DNA from: Hyalangium minutum
GTDB taxonomy: Bacteria; Myxococcota; Myxococcia; Myxococcales; Myxococcaceae
Length of the DNA stretch: 64,000 nucleotides
Direction of reading: 5' to 3'
Assembly (NCBI RefSeq): GCF_000737315.1
Contig: NZ_JMCB01000009.1
Coordinates: 124,001 to 188,000, forward strand
Positions 18,202-56,143 of the stretch are shown one piece after another. Each line of letters begins with the position of its first letter. Position 1 is the stretch's first letter. Under the pieces are notes generated by a model. It was not told the origin of the DNA. It saw nothing but the letters and a program-made list of their open reading frames with translations, and did no database searches. A program made the translations under genes and the position numbers.

Positions 18202-18324
18202 AATCTCCCTTGTCGGTGTTTCGATTCCGCTCCTGGGCACATAGACCCGTAAAGAAGAGCTAGCGAGAGCACCTTGCTCCGCACTGGCGCGATCCTTCGA
18301 ACTCGTATGAGCGCTCTTACGGAA

Positions 18325-19074
18325 CTACACAGGGTTCAGGTGAAGATTGTCGATCAAGATTTCCGACAGTTTCAGGAGTTCAGTACGGTTATGTGCGAGA
18401 ACATGTATCAGAGGAGTTTGCCCAGGAGTCTCCGACATGACCACCGTGGCATCTCCGCGCTCGTAACAACCCGTCGTGCTGGACGACTGCGGATGGAGAA
18501 CGAAACGGAGCCTCGTCAGAACTTGGGTCATTCGCTCTCGGAAGTCGGACGACCACTTGAGGCAATCAAGCATTCGATCATTCGAGAACTGGTCGAGGTA
18601 GAACTGGTAATAGGCCCTGATGAAGACGAGTTCATACAAGGATGCCGCCTGCCAGATCTGCTGACGGATGGCTTCTGCGAAGTCTTTTTCGTCTTCGACC
18701 GAGGGGAAGCTGACAACGGGCGAATCTCCTTGGGTTCCAAGGTCCAAGTAATACACATCATAGGGGTCCGCTTGATTGATGCCGATACGGAAGTAACGCT
18801 CAGGGGACCTCGGGATGTTCTTTCTTGAGAAGAACTTGCGGGCTGCCTGGGCACTGAAGTCAGCATGCTCGAACAGCACGAGTTCACCCATGCTGCGCCC
18901 CATAAGGTGCAGGAACTCGCGGTAACTTGGGGGCAGCTCCCTACCCGCGAGCGACCGAAGCTCTTCGAGTTCGGTGGGGGCCAGTCCCTGTATCTCTTGA
19001 GGAAACGAAGGGCGGTATTGAGCAATGGCTGACACCACTTGGTGCATCCTGCTTTTCTGGGCGTTCGTTTGCAT
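18325..19074 (-). CDS. SMI1/KNR4 (SUKH) family immunity protein
   Basis: GLAPTELEELRSLAGRELPPSYREFLHLMG signature; directly downstream of the PAAR-like toxin; AT-richer DNA. Confidence 0.8.
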   Translation of the reverse strand: MQTNAQKSRMHQVVSAIAQYRPSFPQEIQGLAPTELEELRSLAGRELPPSYREFLHLMGRSMGELVLFEHADFSAQAARKFFSRKNIPRSPERYFRIGINQADPYDVYYLDLGTQGDSPVVSFPSVEDEKDFAEAIRQQIWQAASLYELVFIRAYYQFYLDQFSNDRMLDCLKWSSDFRERMTQVLTRLRFVLHPQSSSTTGCYERGDATVVMSETPGQTPLIHVLAHNRTELLKLSEILIDNLHLNPV

Positions 19075-19098
19075 GGAAATACTCAGAGGGCCGAGAAA

Positions 19099-20088
19099 CT
19101 ATTTGGACGAGCGGATGACAAGGGTGAAAGGTTCATCGGGGTGCTCGGGTGGCTTGGGGCAAAGCAGTGCAGGGAGTATCTGCTTGCATGTCGAACAGGA
19201 TTCGTAGTGGCGACCGTCTTTACGCCCCTCGCTGTTGGTAGGTCCTACCCAGAACTCCGTCAGTGATTTGATAGTATAGCCGCGCTGGATCGCCTCTGAT
19301 ATCAGTTTCTGCGCTGCGCAGTTTCCCGGTTCGTTACCCTTGAAGTTGGGGGCTTTCTTGACGATGAGCCTTCTTCCTCCCACGGTTCTCCATTGCATGG
19401 GAGACGGAGGACTTGGTCTAACCGGGAACTCTTTCGGAGGCATGCCGCCGGAGTGCATCTGAAAATAGGCATCTTGAGCACCTCCAGGTGGATGACAGCG
19501 CAACACACCAGCCATGTAGCCCTTTGGCTCGCCATCGATCATTTTGGGGAGAGAACGTTTGTAGAGTTCCTGGGCGCGTGACTCGCTGAGATCATCCGAT
19601 TTTAACTCGTGAAGCTTTCCACAGATTGGACACTTCTCATCTGCCCCGTAGGTGAGATTCTCGCTTGGCATCCCAATGGCGGCGTTGCCAAGGACAGGGT
19701 TACCGCCTGTGTTGCCCGAGTTGCCGTTGTGGATACAAACATCCAGAAAGCGGACTACCCCCTTACCCTCGATTTTGACGTCGATGCTGGAACTGGCCCA
19801 AGTGACCGTCCCCTTGATTTTGGAGGAGATGAGTCCGCCACCGGCCGTGCCCCCCTCGTTGCCTGAACTGGTGCTCAGCTTGGAGGAACTGAGGGCCACT
19901 GGGTTGCCATCTATATGAACTGACTGCGTGCCTTGCGCCAGGTTCGAGTCCTGCGCGACGTTGACGTAGGGCACCGGCAAGGGCCCGCCCGGTGAGGGGG
20001 TCTTGCACACGTCTGGAGCGGGACAGGTCTGCGTCCGCCCATCGCCCTCGTGCAGCACTGAGCGGCCATTGATGTAGACCTTGGTCAT
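19099..20088 (-). CDS. PAAR-like (DUF4150) domain protein with a C-terminal deaminase-fold toxin domain
   Basis: N-terminus PDVCKTPSPGGPLPVPYVN...SSGNEGGTAGG..S...G...SIDVKIEGKGVVRFLD; C-terminus GNCAAQKL...EFWVG...SCSTC. Confidence 0.85.
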   Translation of the reverse strand: MTKVYINGRSVLHEGDGRTQTCPAPDVCKTPSPGGPLPVPYVNVAQDSNLAQGTQSVHIDGNPVALSSSKLSTSSGNEGGTAGGGLISSKIKGTVTWASSSIDVKIEGKGVVRFLDVCIHNGNSGNTGGNPVLGNAAIGMPSENLTYGADEKCPICGKLHELKSDDLSESRAQELYKRSLPKMIDGEPKGYMAGVLRCHPPGGAQDAYFQMHSGGMPPKEFPVRPSPPSPMQWRTVGGRRLIVKKAPNFKGNEPGNCAAQKLISEAIQRGYTIKSLTEFWVGPTNSEGRKDGRHYESCSTCKQILPALLCPKPPEHPDEPFTLVIRSSK

Positions 20089-20207
20089 TTATCTCCCCCG
20101 TGCAGCACTGGATGACCGCCTGAACTGCCCGACGATTTCAGCGCCCGGCAAGCAGGTCAACTGGCCAAGCTGGCTCTTACATAGGGTAGAACAAAGCGCT
20201 CCTCGGT

Positions 20208-20897
20208 CTATCGGTTCTCTAGGCGCGAGACCTTTGCGTGGAGACGGACGAGCCGCTGCTCGCGGTCCTTGGCGAGGTGCAGTGAGCGGTGACAGTTCGG
20301 ACAGAGCGCAACGGAGTTCTCGGCCGTGTCAGCGCCACCCTCCGCGAGCGTCTTGACGTGATGGACTTCGAGGAAGGGGGCGCCGTCCTTGTCCTCGAAC
20401 GGTGCGGGGTGGTCGCAGAGCTCGCACTTGCCACCTGCCTCTTCGAGGACGTATGCGCGAACAAGAGGGTCGCGCTTGAAGACCTTGGAGGTCACCGATG
20501 TCGACTCGGGTGTCTCCCGACCTTTGGGTTTCTCCAGGGGACCGAGTGCCTTCGCCAGCTTGGTACTCTTGTCGAGTTCCACAGGGTCCGACGTCGGGCT
20601 GAGCGGAATCAGCCCCTCCGCCGCACGCAGCACCGCAGGGACCAGCGCTGCTGGATAATTGGGATAGGGCACGTATCCCTTGAGCCACGGAAGATGACGC
20701 TCTTGCAGCACTGCCGAGATGTTGCCGAACCTCATCTCAACCGCGCCCTTCGTGCGGTTCTGGAGGGCGGTAGCGAGCAGGCTGCGAATGAAGTCCGCCT
20801 TCACGAACGGCTCGTCGCGCTCGTGCATGCGGTACATTTCGAAGTATGCGGCGACGGTTGCGTCAATCTCCGCCGGGGTCCAGTCGTTGCGGGCCAT
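20208..20897 (-). CDS. HNH endonuclease, McrA-like (candidate type IV restriction nuclease)
   Basis: CELC...FLEVHHV..LAEGGAD..EN.VALCPNCHR.LH, with an N-terminal WT..E....V.AYF.M domain. Confidence 0.85.
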   Translation of the reverse strand: MARNDWTPAEIDATVAAYFEMYRMHERDEPFVKADFIRSLLATALQNRTKGAVEMRFGNISAVLQERHLPWLKGYVPYPNYPAALVPAVLRAAEGLIPLSPTSDPVELDKSTKLAKALGPLEKPKGRETPESTSVTSKVFKRDPLVRAYVLEEAGGKCELCDHPAPFEDKDGAPFLEVHHVKTLAEGGADTAENSVALCPNCHRSLHLAKDREQRLVRLHAKVSRLENR

Positions 20898-20972
20898 TGC
20901 CCGAAACTCTATGCCAACGCGCTCCCCTCAAAACATGGTCGCCGTCTTGGACAGAGGATACGAGGCACGAAG

Positions 20973-52836: not shown

Positions 52837-54135
52837 ATGGGCCCACCTCACACGCCGCCCGATCCAGCTGACCTCGAAGCGGATCCGCTCCTGGCGGAGA
52901 AGCGGGCCCTGGAGAAGCGTGTCCGCGAGCTGGAGGCCAAGGCGCGAAGCCTGGACGCCATCAACCGTTTGGCCGCATCGCTGCTGCAGCCGCAGACGGA
53001 CGTGGACGACATCCTGTGGGACGTGGCGCAGGGAGTGGTGGCGCACCTGGGGCTGGAGGACTGCGTCATCTATCTGTTCGACGAGCAGCGCGAGTACCTC
53101 GTCCAGCGAGCGGCCTACGGCCCGAAGAACCCACAGCAGCGGGAGATCCTGGCGCCCATCCGCATCAAGGTGGGGGCGGGCATCGTGGGGACGGTGTCGC
53201 TGACGGGGCGTCCAGAGCTGATCCCGGATACGCGGAAGGACTCGCGCTACATCCAGGATGATCAAGCGCGGCTGTCGGAGCTGGCGGTGCCGATCTACTC
53301 CCAGGAGCAGGTGATCGGGGTGATGGACTCGGAGCACTCGCAGGAGGGCTTCTTCACTCAAGAGCACCTGCACATCTTCACGACGGTGGCGACGATGATG
53401 GCGGCGCGGGTGGTGCGTGCGGAGCTGGACGCGCAGCTACGGGATGCGAACCGGCTGCTGGAGGCGCGCATCACGGAGCGAACCCGCGAGCTGTCCGAGG
53501 CCACCCAGCGCTCCGAGCTGCTGCTGCGCAACATCCTCCCCCACCCCATCGTCGAGCGCCTCAAGCGGGGCGAGCATGCGATTGCGGAGCGCTTCGACGA
53601 GGTGACGGTGATGTTCGCGGACCTGGTGGACTTCACGCGCTGGTCCACGCTGTTGTCACCGGAGCACGTGGTGGAGGTGCTGGGGCAGGTGTTCACGGAG
53701 TTCGACGCCGTGACGGAGCGCTACGGGCTGGAGAAGATCAAGACGATCGGGGACTCGTACATGGTGGTGGCGGGTTTGCCGTCGCCGCGGCCGGATCACC
53801 GGGAGGTGATGGCGATCATGGCGTTGGCGTTCGTGGACGCCATCCAGCGGCTGAACGTGACGCTGAAGACGTCGCTGGACGTGCGGATCGGCATGCACTG
53901 TGGACCGGTGGTGGCGGGCATCATCGGCACACGGAAGTTCGCCTACGACTTGTGGGGGGACACGGTGAACATGGCCAGCCGGTTGGAGTCCCACGGCGTG
54001 CCTGGACGTATCCACGTGAGCGAAGCCATCTGGCAGGCGCTCAACGACCGATTCGCCTTCGAGCCCCGCGGGGAGATCGAAGTGAAGAGCATCGGCAAGG
54101 TGAAGACCTGGCTGCTCACGGGCCTTCGCGAGTGA
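52837..54135 (+). CDS. GAF-domain adenylate cyclase (class III)
   Basis: GAF domain (GIVGTV..TG...I.D...D.RY, SELAVP); FADLVDFT, KTIGD and YDLWGDTVNMASR carry the ATP-specifying K/D residues. Confidence 0.92.
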   Translation: MGPPHTPPDPADLEADPLLAEKRALEKRVRELEAKARSLDAINRLAASLLQPQTDVDDILWDVAQGVVAHLGLEDCVIYLFDEQREYLVQRAAYGPKNPQQREILAPIRIKVGAGIVGTVSLTGRPELIPDTRKDSRYIQDDQARLSELAVPIYSQEQVIGVMDSEHSQEGFFTQEHLHIFTTVATMMAARVVRAELDAQLRDANRLLEARITERTRELSEATQRSELLLRNILPHPIVERLKRGEHAIAERFDEVTVMFADLVDFTRWSTLLSPEHVVEVLGQVFTEFDAVTERYGLEKIKTIGDSYMVVAGLPSPRPDHREVMAIMALAFVDAIQRLNVTLKTSLDVRIGMHCGPVVAGIIGTRKFAYDLWGDTVNMASRLESHGVPGRIHVSEAIWQALNDRFAFEPRGEIEVKSIGKVKTWLLTGLRE

Positions 54136-54143
54136 CGCGTATA

Positions 54144-55250
54144 ATGATTCCCTCGTCTCAGTCCATTCAGGCGCACAAGAGCGCTATCTGGTCCATCTGC
54201 GCATCCCCCTCGGGCCTTATCGTGACCGCGGGCGGCGATGGGTTGCTCAAGTCATGGAACGTCGAGGCAAGTACCGGCAGGTTCCTTCCGCTCGCGGAGG
54301 TCATCACTCCGCACGCAGAGACATTGCTGGTCCATCAAAGCCCCCGCGGCGTCCTGCTCTCCGCAGGCCACGAGGGAGGAGTCGCTGTCTGGGAGATGGA
54401 TCCAGCCTCGGGTAAACTGGAGCAGCGACAGCAACTCAAGCTCCCCGATGATCGCGACCACTACAATGATCGCATGCTCGAAACCCATTCGGGCTATCTC
54501 CTTGCATGGGCGAGCGGAACGGCGGGACTCCCTGCTCTGTGCCGATGGTCCGAAACGGAGCGAGCCTTCTTTTTCCACCAGCAATTGCCCATCGAGCGGG
54601 CATCTACTTTCTTGGAGCTGCCGGACGGGTCGTTGTTGTCGGGTGATTCCACGGGCCAGATTTGCAGCTGGCGCCCAGACCAGTCTTCTGGAGGCTGGCA
54701 AAAGGCGGGAGCCCTGCAGGCTCATGAGGGCCCGATTCATGCGCTTGCCAACCTCCGGAACGGGGGCCTGATCTCAGCGGGTGGACATGAGCCACAGCTC
54801 AAGGTCTGGAGAGGTCATCTCGGCTCGGAGAAGTGGGAGCTCGTTCAAGTTCTCAGCGAGCATCACAGCCAGATCGTTGAGGTCATGAGCTGTGGCCCCG
54901 CGGAGTTCCTGTCGTCCGACCGGGGAGAGCGGTCTCTGCTCGGATGGCGACGCCAGCCAGAAGTGCTCGTGTGGAGCATGGCGACAGACAAGCCAAGCCT
55001 TATTCAACGGCAGAATGGCCGGCTCCGCGGTTGCATCGAGGGCGCTTTGCTCTTGGAAGACGATGGAGCATCCGCACTCAGCCTATGGCGCAAGTCCGAG
55101 GGCGCCTACAAGCGGACCACGGTGCTCGATGAGAGCAAGCGCGGCAACATGAGCGCCTTTGTCCTGTTACCTGAAGGAACACTCATCGCTGGTGGATGGG
55201 ATGGACGCCTCATTTCCTGGAAGCTTGAGGCTGGAGAATCGACGTCATGA
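54144..55250 (+). CDS. WD40-repeat protein
   Basis: AHKSAIWSI..TAGGDGLLKSW, AHEGPIHAL..SAGGHEPQLKVW, AGGWDGRLISW; AT-richer DNA. Confidence 0.8.
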   Translation: MIPSSQSIQAHKSAIWSICASPSGLIVTAGGDGLLKSWNVEASTGRFLPLAEVITPHAETLLVHQSPRGVLLSAGHEGGVAVWEMDPASGKLEQRQQLKLPDDRDHYNDRMLETHSGYLLAWASGTAGLPALCRWSETERAFFFHQQLPIERASTFLELPDGSLLSGDSTGQICSWRPDQSSGGWQKAGALQAHEGPIHALANLRNGGLISAGGHEPQLKVWRGHLGSEKWELVQVLSEHHSQIVEVMSCGPAEFLSSDRGERSLLGWRRQPEVLVWSMATDKPSLIQRQNGRLRGCIEGALLLEDDGASALSLWRKSEGAYKRTTVLDESKRGNMSAFVLLPEGTLIAGGWDGRLISWKLEAGESTS

Positions 55251-56086
55251 TCTCACGTCGAGACCTCTTGATGTGGGCCGGACTGGGCACCACAAACCTA
55301 CTGGGCACGGGGTGTTCTCCAGCCAGAGTCACGAGCGAAGCACCTGCTCGATTCATGCAAGGCCACGATGAACTGGATGCGCCAGTTCCAGCTGCATTCC
55401 TTCTTTCCGTGGATCCCTCGGGCTTGATCCACGTAGCGACACGCCGAGGGCAGAGCATGGGTGAGTTCAAGTCCACTCTCCCCAACGCAACGTTGCGGCA
55501 TAGACAGAGTGCGCTCCAGCCCGACTCTGGCCGTCAGTCCTTCAATCCAGCAGTCCTCCTCTCCGATGTTCCTCCTCCGTTACAACCCATTGCCCGCCAC
55601 CCGCTGCGTCACGCTCAATCCCTGAACGATCCTTATATTTTGGATTTGATTGCCACGCTCGACTCCTATCCACGTTTCGGACTGCGCTCCGCGCCACAGG
55701 AGCAGCGAATCGAGTTGGCTTCAGATGTCAAAGTCAAGATCCCCGGTTATTTCATCCGCATCAGCTTTGAAAAGCACTACGTTGGGGGATGCGTCAAACG
55801 TGACTCGTGGCACGCAGGCGTGCTGCTCCGCGACCTGGCGAGCAACACCTTGCTTTTCGATCTTCATGTCGCATTCTGGTGGGAGCAGTGGCGTCCGTGC
55901 TTCGCCATCTACGAAAGCGCGAACGGTTTCTGCAGGAATGTCTGCGACCAGCTGAGTTGGAAAGCCTTGATTGTTGTCATCTACGCTGCACTCGCCGTGA
56001 CACTGGCGGCTTGGGTGGCGGAGGCCTTCGCAGCTGCGATTGCGGCCGCGCTCCTCGGTATGGCGCTCGTCCTGAGCCCGGTCTGA
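55247..56086 (+). CDS. Tat-exported (lipo)protein with a 4-Cys domain and hydrophobic C-terminal tail
   Basis: SRRDLL twin-arginine motif, LLGTGC lipobox-like, ~42-aa apolar C-terminus; ATGA overlap with the WD40 gene. Confidence 0.7.
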   Translation: MISRRDLLMWAGLGTTNLLGTGCSPARVTSEAPARFMQGHDELDAPVPAAFLLSVDPSGLIHVATRRGQSMGEFKSTLPNATLRHRQSALQPDSGRQSFNPAVLLSDVPPPLQPIARHPLRHAQSLNDPYILDLIATLDSYPRFGLRSAPQEQRIELASDVKVKIPGYFIRISFEKHYVGGCVKRDSWHAGVLLRDLASNTLLFDLHVAFWWEQWRPCFAIYESANGFCRNVCDQLSWKALIVVIYAALAVTLAAWVAEAFAAAIAAALLGMALVLSPV

Positions 56087-56143
56087 TGATCGCTCCCGTG
56101 AGCATCGACACCCGATCCGTCGGGCGGTAACCTGCCCGCGCCC

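Follow-up and report, generated by a model that had tools for sequence, protein, structure and literature searches.

A PAAR-like effector gene of Hyalangium minutum with a predicted TrcP-type cytidine deaminase tip and a SUKH-type partner gene

Introduction

TrcP (VCA0104) is a tRNA C-to-pseudouridine editor of Vibrio cholerae. Its N-terminal domain is sufficient to deaminate C32 of tRNA-Tyr to U in vitro; zinc is present in the protein, water supplies the oxygen of the product, as traced with 18O, and C-to-U editing is abolished by mutation of any of the three zinc residues C282, C324 and C328 or of E303, located 21 residues downstream of the first zinc cysteine (Kimura et al. 2022, PMC9553926). 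The same authors report 3oj6 and 4eg2 as structural matches of TrcP, state that all TrcP homologues carry both a deaminase and a pseudouridine synthase domain, and suggest that the deaminase domain of TrcP arose independently of other deaminases (PMC9553926). Here we describe a two-gene locus of the myxobacterium Hyalangium minutum, located in a stretch of 64,000 nucleotides (NCBI RefSeq assembly GCF_000737315.1, contig NZ_JMCB01000009.1, positions 124,001 to 188,000 of the forward strand; the whole stretch is hereafter called the window, and all coordinates refer to it). The first gene codes for a PAAR-like protein, hereafter the toxin, that ends in a domain homologous to the deaminase domain of TrcP, and the second for a protein of the SUKH (SMI1/KNR4) type. 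We consider it likely that both genes form an orphan effector–immunity pair of a type VI secretion system (T6SS) and that the tip of the effector is an ordinary cytosine deaminase of the TrcP type, relying on zinc and a glutamate.

Cytosine deaminase tips that are delivered by a T6SS and encoded upstream of an immunity gene, like the pair found in the window, are exemplified by DddA of Burkholderia cenocepacia, which belongs to the SCP1.201 clade and acts on double-stranded DNA, and by the DYW-like SsdA, which acts on single-stranded DNA. Both DddA and SsdA keep the catalytic glutamate of helix 2 (HxE), whereas the toxin has CAA at this place; they display no detectable sequence relation to the toxin, and their immunity proteins, DddI and SsdI, differ from the SUKH type. 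When the family profile was aligned by hhalign to an approximate DddA sequence, only the CxxC helix was aligned, with a probability of 0.3%. To our knowledge, all the interbacterial deaminase toxins characterized experimentally, namely DddA and SsdA, act on DNA. As for the carrier, Tde2-type DUF4150 effectors, which work with DUF2169 adaptors (e.g. in Agrobacterium), have the same N-terminal spike as the toxin, but the pair in the window is an orphan and its tip belongs to a different family.

Another point of comparison is provided by the YwqJ-like toxins (PF14431), which resemble the toxin in having Gx[CH]x where helix 2 begins, inserts that precede helix 2 and CxxC, a C-terminal truncation and SUKH-type immunity (Iyer et al. 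2011), but which have the helix-2 glutamate that the toxin lacks. For the group comprising YwqJ, BURPS668_1122 and SCP1.201, Iyer et al. (2011) describe a G-x-[C/H] motif opening helix 2, a Lys or Gln two positions beyond that of the Glu, an insert before CxxC and a truncation after helix 3; the toxin family appears to share these features, which we regard as a lead only. PF14431 did not match the window protein or 16 of its relatives and gave one marginal match (E = 0.075) among 30 diverse members, and profile comparisons do not confirm the resemblance to the YwqJ group. The searchable literature yielded no paper linking TrcP-type deaminases to toxins.

Results

Homology between the toxin tip and the deaminase domain of TrcP

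The relatives of the toxin tip were collected with a profile of the domain alone, built from 16 myxobacterial toxin tips only and run against a library of 1.84 billion representative proteins. This profile retrieved 853 relatives, including 96 with E-values of at most 1e-10; the best 150 were inspected, and the conservation counts given below refer to the best 148 of the 853, aligned to the profile. In seven of these 148, a PseudoU_synth_2 domain forms the C-terminus, and the deaminase-like domain, split by a long helical insert, is N-terminal. Such synthase-fused proteins are matched by the toxin-only hidden Markov model (HMM) at E-values ranging from 2.7e-12, for P0077, to 2.2e-9 (P0089, 9.6e-12), and all seven display the spacing C-21-E-21-C-x3-C. 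A genome scan located synthase-fused forms at 598 loci in Vibrionaceae, Bacteroidota, Nostoc and Myxococcales, the same taxonomic spread as that reported for TrcP by Kimura et al. The clusters of ten superfamily representatives, when looked up, consisted almost entirely of unnamed metagenomic proteins, the only named one being that of P0077 (“RluA family pseudouridine synthase [Myxococcales bacterium]”). An initial annotation of the locus, made from the DNA alone, had linked the motifs of the toxin to an uncharacterized N-terminal extension of some RluA pseudouridine synthases; the synthase-fused representatives bear out the link, but not the adjective, the extension being the deaminase domain of TrcP.

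The correspondence extends to individual residues. Vibrio TrcP orthologues score 41–46 bits against the HMM of the myxobacterial toxin tips, and those of V. diabolicus and V. galatheae carry the motifs exactly at C282 (CAAPK), E303 (AEFWWG) and C324/C328 (SCNSKC). Using BLASTP, residues 255–305 of the toxin align with residues 291–343 of V. splendidus TrcP (49% identity over 53 residues), with Cys paired with Cys, Glu with Glu and CxxC with CxxxC. According to these alignments, C257, E278, C298 and C301 of the toxin correspond to C282, E303, C324 and C328 of TrcP. Altogether, the two proteins share (i) a homologous domain containing a Cys3 cluster and a strand-3 glutamate at a C-to-E spacing of 21; (ii) the motifs CAAPK and (A/T)EFW.G; (iii) an alanine at the position of the canonical glutamate; (iv) a deaminase-like fold. 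Thus, as far as can be judged from the alignments, the toxin domain has every TrcP-type deaminase feature that was examined, that is, the sequence similarity, the three cysteines and a glutamate lying outside helix 2.

Conversely, the two proteins are built differently around this common core. Only 42 residues, with no long helix, separate the SG motif of the toxin from C257, against ~195 residues in the V. diabolicus orthologue of TrcP. The toxin ends 19 residues past C310 and has no PseudoU_synth_2 match, hence no pseudouridine synthase; it contains an extra zinc knuckle (CxxC..H plus a Cys), the site of which is absent from Vibrio TrcP; and it carries a PAAR-like secretion domain and is accompanied by a presumed immunity gene. 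TrcP is a housekeeping editor and the toxin presumably a weapon. Since it lacks both the long helical (LHL) domain and the synthase, the toxin is not an orthologue of TrcP.

Note that in one TrcP orthologue, from a Photobacterium metagenome-assembled genome (L068), the catalytic glutamate is replaced by a lysine (AMAKFWWG) in an otherwise intact gene, which may represent an inactive editor or an assembly error.

Conservation of the predicted catalytic and zinc-binding residues

The C257-A258-A259 triplet is invariant in all 18 close sequences, and C257 is conserved in 146 of 146 representatives. Position 258 is occupied by Ala (125 sequences), Cys (12) or Ser (8) and position 259 by Ala in 141 of 146, the others having Gly (4) or Glu (1); two residues further on, position 261 is Lys (117), Arg (16) or His (6), so that K, R or H is found in 139 of 146. 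The initial annotation had asked whether CAAxK is a feature of the whole family and had envisaged that, if the close homologues all had CAE instead, the alanine would be an inactivating mutation; CAAxK is indeed family-wide, so that the alanine does not represent such a mutation. The codon of A259 is GCG (19314–19312) and, as had been pointed out, lies one base from GAG, which C>A at 19313 would suffice to produce.

Further downstream, E278 is conserved in 146 of 147 sequences and W280 in 121, C298 in 138 of 140, C301 in 140 of 140 and C310 in 130 of 139; the catalytic tetrad is kept in more than 98% of the 148 diverse representatives. The (P)CxxC motif found at the start of helix 3 is present as S-C298-x-x-C301, and the [H/C]xE motif of helix 2 is absent, the toxin having C-A-A. 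Given the alignment of E278 with TrcP E303, the chemistry is most likely an ordinary hydrolytic deamination based on zinc and a glutamate, with the glutamate coming from strand 3. With the catalytic glutamate relocated in this way, there is no need to invoke the non-canonical chemistry that the initial annotation had deduced from the glutamate missing in helix 2; the invariant E278 of the TEFW motif had been overlooked.

A second group of residues is also well conserved. Where the knuckle is aligned, C153 and C156 are each present in 58 of 59 sequences and H160 in 53 of 58. All 89 knuckle-bearing sequences have a Cys (87) or a His (2) at position 310, and all six sequences devoid of Cys or His at this position are also devoid of the knuckle (p = 0.001 in a Fisher test that takes no account of phylogeny). 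C153, C156, H160 and C310 probably bind a second, structural zinc.

One representative departs from the common pattern at both glutamate positions. P0148, a metagenomic DUF4150 protein of 309 residues, combines two features seen in no other representative: its helix 2 has the canonical C-S-E-Q-K, and its strand 3 lacks the glutamate, TANMS replacing TEFW. It has the appearance of a natural exchange of the catalytic glutamate between the two positions; a search for relatives of P0148 found none, so the exchange is documented by a single metagenomic sequence.

Predicted fold of the tip

Residues ~140–329 gave no match to a deaminase family when compared with Pfam, NCBIfam, PADLOC and the PDB sequences, and the only Pfam matches of the domain are weak zinc-ribbon ones (E-values from 0.01 to 1). 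A first structural model of 196 residues (predicted local distance difference test, pLDDT, 89.7) displays the order α1-β1-β2-insert-α2-β3-α3, with the cysteines located at helix N-termini. A second model was restricted to the 153-residue core and computed from a diverse alignment of 32 sequences (pLDDT 88.8). When it was compared with the PDB using Foldseek, the top five matches were all cytidine deaminases (probability 0.82–0.30, TM score 0.39–0.48): they include mouse cytidine deaminase (CDA; 2fr5, 2fr6 and 1zab, probability 0.82–0.60, TM score 0.42–0.48) and yeast CDD1 (1r5t), the probability reaching 0.82 at TM scores of 0.43/0.47, and are followed by APOBEC3H and by DddA (6u08 and 8e5d, TM score 0.37–0.43, root-mean-square deviation 4.3–5.2 Å). 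These matches, with weak E-values, point to a zinc-dependent deaminase fold for the toxin tip. The CDA and blasticidin-S deaminase family, to which the best structural matches belong (2fr5, 1r5t), shares the Cys3 site with the toxin, but CDAs are tetrameric enzymes acting on free nucleosides, they have CAE in helix 2, and the toxin has no detectable sequence similarity to them.

The toxin gene and the carriers of the domain

The coordinates of the locus are given in Table 1. Both open reading frames described in the initial annotation were recovered, together with the peptides that it had quoted from the toxin (CPICGKLH, YMAGVL, HSG, GNCAAQKLISEAIQRGYTIKSLTEFWVG and RKDGRHYESCSTCKQIL); the intergenic gap is 24 nt and not 25 bp. 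Its view of the locus, in which a PAAR-like effector ending in a deaminase fold is accompanied by its cognate SUKH-type gene, is likewise supported. The toxin gene would code for a T6SS effector made of a PAAR-like spike and a deaminase tip, with partner genes lying outside the window.

Table 1. Features of the toxin–immunity locus and of the surrounding island (window coordinates)
Feature	Position	Strand	Description and basis
Toxin gene, 329 aa	19099..20088	-	DUF4150 PAAR-like domain, linker and predicted TrcP-type cytidine deaminase domain; open reading frame call, PF13665
DUF4150 / Tox-PAAR-like spike-tip domain, residues 21–123	19720..20028	-	PF13665 E = 6.1e-31, exceeds curated cut-off; PAAR_motif E = 1.5e-4
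Shine-Dalgarno-like GGGGGAGA	20092..20099	-	4 nt before the start codon (ATG, 20088) of the toxin gene; read from sequence
Predicted TrcP-type zinc CDA toxin domain, residues ~147–312	19153..19650	-	Profile matches, Vibrio TrcP orthologues, models, Foldseek
C257-A258-A259, helix 2 start	19312..19320	-	C257, predicted zinc ligand 1 (TrcP C282); A259 at the canonical Glu position
E278 (GAG), TEFW motif, strand 3	19255..19257	-	Predicted catalytic glutamate (TrcP E303); 21 residues past the first Cys
C298-x-x-C301, helix 3 start	19186..19197	-	Predicted zinc ligands 2 and 3 (TrcP C324, C328)
YGADEKCPICGKLH zinc knuckle, C153, C156, H160	19609..19650	-	Predicted second, structural zinc site with C310 (19159–19161)
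Predicted immunity gene, 249 aa	18325..19074	-	SUKH (SMI1/KNR4) superfamily; separated by 24 nt from the stop of the toxin gene
Low-GC island	18202..20972	.	2.8 kb; flanked by core genes (zinc alcohol dehydrogenase and zinc metallopeptidase)
HNH endonuclease gene	20208..20897	-	Pfam HNH E = 2e-10; PADLOC mREase_IV E = 6e-30; PDC-S36 E = 1e-25; GC3 0.77

Seventeen close relatives of the C-terminal domain are detectable, every one of them fused to DUF4150; those that bear a name are all myxobacterial (Archangium, Myxococcus xanthus and Pseudenhygromyxa), and a copy of the toxin with 97% identity was found elsewhere. In the wider family, the domain is almost always located at the extreme C-terminus, with 10–45 residues beyond CxxC, and its carriers comprise 17 DUF4150 fusions, one fusion to eCIS_core (DUF4157), giants of up to 1213 residues with CarboxypepD_reg or Ig repeats, and many short forms. 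This variety of carriers is the pattern of polymorphic toxins. Some 45 of the 148 representatives contain a long helical insert like that of TrcP but no pseudouridine synthase, and therefore contradict the published claim that the homologues always carry the synthase. Two of them, P0022 and P0040, belong, in two loci examined, to a conserved three-gene cassette (loci L089, 1459–3884; L090, 935–3290; L091) consisting of an uncharacterized gene coding for ~131 residues, the deaminase gene and a gene for ~240 residues that is of the same immunity family as that of the window.

The 5′ end of the toxin gene shows a 20-nt direct repeat (20041–20060 and 20091–20110, 18 of 20 positions identical, 50 nt apart), which copies toxin codons 10–16 (SVLHEGD) into the 5′ leader and overlaps the ribosome-binding site; by chance, about 0.06 such repeat pairs are expected in the region, as a rough estimate. 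The repeat may be a recombination scar at the conserved 5′ end of DUF4150 genes.

The predicted immunity family and the homologous loci

In the protein encoded downstream of the toxin, one region matches SMI1_KNR4 (E = 1.2e-4, 23.1 bits), SUKH_5 (E = 0.003) and SUKH_6 (E = 0.009). Within the immunity family, five of seven homologues match SMI1_KNR4, the best at E = 8e-7; the SUKH assignment, as predicted from profiles, thus appears weak for the window protein taken alone and sound for the family. Every DUF4150 locus examined (L001, L002, L003 and L087) has a SUKH-type homologue of ~250 residues after the toxin, encoded by one or two genes whose products are 42%, 40% and 22% identical to that of the window gene. 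The same family is found after the long-insert CDA toxins of L089 and L090, where it scores 93–119 bits against the family HMM. Its presence next to unrelated carriers indicates that the immunity family tracks the deaminase domain rather than the part used for delivery, which in turn designates the deaminase domain as the toxic part.

The four DUF4150 loci also lie in VgrG or DUF2169 modules. Homologous loci display the gene order DUF2169, uncharacterized gene, DUF4150 toxin, immunity gene. The uncharacterized gene is conserved and unannotated and codes for ~316–355 residues (L001, 4937–6004; L003, 4940–5890; L087, 2278–3306); it has no counterpart in the window, and its product may be a second adaptor or a chaperone.

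Finally, MGMT-type DNA_binding_1 genes lie near two genes carrying the deaminase domain (L001, 8614–9033, 139 residues; L085, 5365–6495, Ada-like, 376 residues). They hint weakly at a connection with DNA damage, and their proximity may be a coincidence.

Genomic context

The pair lies in a low-GC island, which agrees with the AT-richer setting devoid of T6SS genes noted at the outset: GC is 55–58% at 18–20 kb and 55–63% over the whole island, against ~69% in the flanks, and GC at third codon positions (GC3) is 0.65–0.66 for the toxin and SUKH genes and 0.65–0.77 over the island, against ~0.88 for the neighboring genes. No T6SS structural gene was found among the more than 25 proteins scanned across the 64-kb window. 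No tRNA gene was detected at the borders of the island, nor direct or inverted repeats beyond chance, and a scan for promoters and terminators gave nothing exceeding the shuffled expectation. A look-up of the alcohol dehydrogenase of the flank, meant to identify relatives devoid of the island, yielded no record of it.

Directly upstream of the toxin gene, within the same island, lies a gene for an HNH endonuclease. Its product resembles type IV methyl-directed restriction enzymes, and its N-terminal half matches the candidate defense family PDC-S36. It is tied to the toxin pair by location alone; as they share one island, the pair and the HNH gene make up two adjacent conflict modules.

A second low-GC patch (window ~54100–56090, plus strand, GC 0.58–0.62) contains an open reading frame coding for a WD40 β-propeller and ending at 55250, overlapped by an open reading frame of 279 codons (55247–56086) whose product matches no Pfam family and is hydrophobic at its C-terminus. 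The patch may be another acquired gene pair.

Discussion

Homology to TrcP, conservation of the residues, a deaminase-like fold in the models and a conserved gene pairing characterize the domain described here. From these features, we infer how the pair would be delivered, act on its substrate, intoxicate and be neutralized. The DUF4150 domain would form a PAAR-like cone seated on a VgrG spike whose gene would lie in another part of the genome, and the whole protein would be fired into neighboring cells. In the tip, the catalytic zinc would be held by the cysteines that open helix 2 (C257) and helix 3 (C298 and C301), Ala259 would take the place of the canonical helix-2 glutamate, and E278, from the TEFW motif of strand 3, would act as the proton shuttle from another position of the backbone; C153, C156, H160 and C310 would bind the second, structural zinc. 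After delivery, the domain would hydrolytically deaminate cytosine to uracil in the nucleic acid of the target cell, and in the producer and its kin, the SUKH protein would bind the deaminase domain and block it.

Several observations weigh against this picture. The activity of the toxin-type members is predicted from their homology to TrcP, and the zinc motif of the toxin is CxxC where TrcP has CxxxC. The toxin also lacks the LHL domain that TrcP needs to bind tRNA, so its substrate recognition must differ from that of TrcP. Sequence profiles connect the family to no Pfam deaminase family and to no solved deaminase; a sequence search of all PDB chains with the domain and with a 30-member profile returned nothing relevant. 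When the untrimmed model was compared with the PDB, Foldseek produced noise (best E = 0.25, for an unrelated protein; APOBEC TM score 0.15–0.23), which is why the domain was trimmed, the alignment deepened and the search rerun; the E-values obtained with the trimmed model are all above 0.1. On the immunity side, the SMI1_KNR4 score of 23.1 bits falls just short of the curated cut-off of 25.4. Lastly, delivery is only assumed, as the 64-kb window contains no gene for VgrG, Hcp or a DUF2169 adaptor.

What else could the tip be? The near-constant alanine at the canonical Glu position, the basic residue that follows it two positions on and the lack of a match to the Pfam deaminase models would suit a protein that has lost its catalytic glutamate and uses the zinc/cysteine site and Lys261 for a different, non-deaminase reaction on nucleic acid. 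We hold this to be very unlikely: E278, invariant but for one sequence in 147, aligns with the TrcP glutamate needed for hydrolytic C-to-U deamination, and the lysine of CAAPK is present in TrcP itself, so that it belongs to an ordinary deaminase and is no sign of a replacement for the glutamate. The lysine also fits the [HD]xEx[KQ] helix-2 pattern of known toxin deaminases. Chemistry based on this lysine was rejected on these grounds. Nor does inactivity account well for the data. An inert tip, either binding nucleic acid or protein and toxic by sequestration or simply part of a decaying, non-toxic orphan, might be suspected from the isolation of the pair, apart from T6SS genes and in foreign-looking DNA, but it is highly improbable in view of the four catalytic residues and the knuckle residues, all intact, of the full-length frame preceded by a good ribosome-binding site, of the near-identical copy found elsewhere, of the immunity gene kept intact and of the conservation of the tetrad among diverse representatives. 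A dead deaminase was rejected in view of the conserved CAA and the intact catalytic residues, and the initial annotation, which had also argued that the domain is not dead, was very probably right, the glutamate and the cysteine ligands being conserved. As for a fold other than that of deaminases, in which the cysteine pairs would be zinc ribbons, it would explain the weak zinc-ribbon matches in Pfam and the noise of the first Foldseek search; set against deaminases as the top five matches of the trimmed model, it is barely conceivable, and a pure zinc-ribbon protein was rejected among the interpretations considered.

If the tip is a TrcP-type cytosine deaminase, as we think likely, its substrate may be RNA or DNA, and the sequence contains nothing that discriminates between the two. 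By analogy, RNA, especially tRNA, is somewhat favored because the sole characterized member of the family edits tRNA and because the long helical insert that tethers tRNA in TrcP is retained, at the position that it has there, by sister toxins paired with this immunity family. Deamination of cytosine in DNA, as by DddA and SsdA, with uracil in the chromosome and not RNA editing as the cause of death or mutation, is a serious but somewhat less likely alternative: it would be in line with the substrates of the interbacterial deaminase toxins known to us, with the presence of DddA among the structural matches, with the lack of the tRNA-tethering helical domain in the toxin and, weakly, with the MGMT/Ada-type DNA-repair genes found near two homologous loci. 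We put forward, tentatively and with real doubt, that these proteins could be the first interbacterial RNA-editing toxins, whose victims would die from C-to-U changes made in their tRNA or in other RNA; in that case, TrcP would be a member that was domesticated and acquired a synthase, and the long-insert forms devoid of synthase would be intermediates. A domesticated TrcP would fit the idea of Iyer and Aravind, in which toxin systems are the source of editing deaminases.

The TrcP-type domain thus appears as a widespread polymorphic-toxin tip with a dedicated SUKH family, its 853 relatives being borne by PAAR-like, eCIS and giant repeat carriers, a result that bears on the suggestion of an independent origin of the TrcP deaminase domain. 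The layout combining a Cys3 zinc site with a strand-3 glutamate is supported by hundreds of natural sequences, and searches based on the (H/C)xE motif therefore miss real deaminases. Being compact (~150 residues) and paired with natural inhibitors, these domains are candidate tools for cytosine editing in RNA or DNA. Should the substrate prove to be RNA, they would constitute a new functional class of interbacterial toxin.

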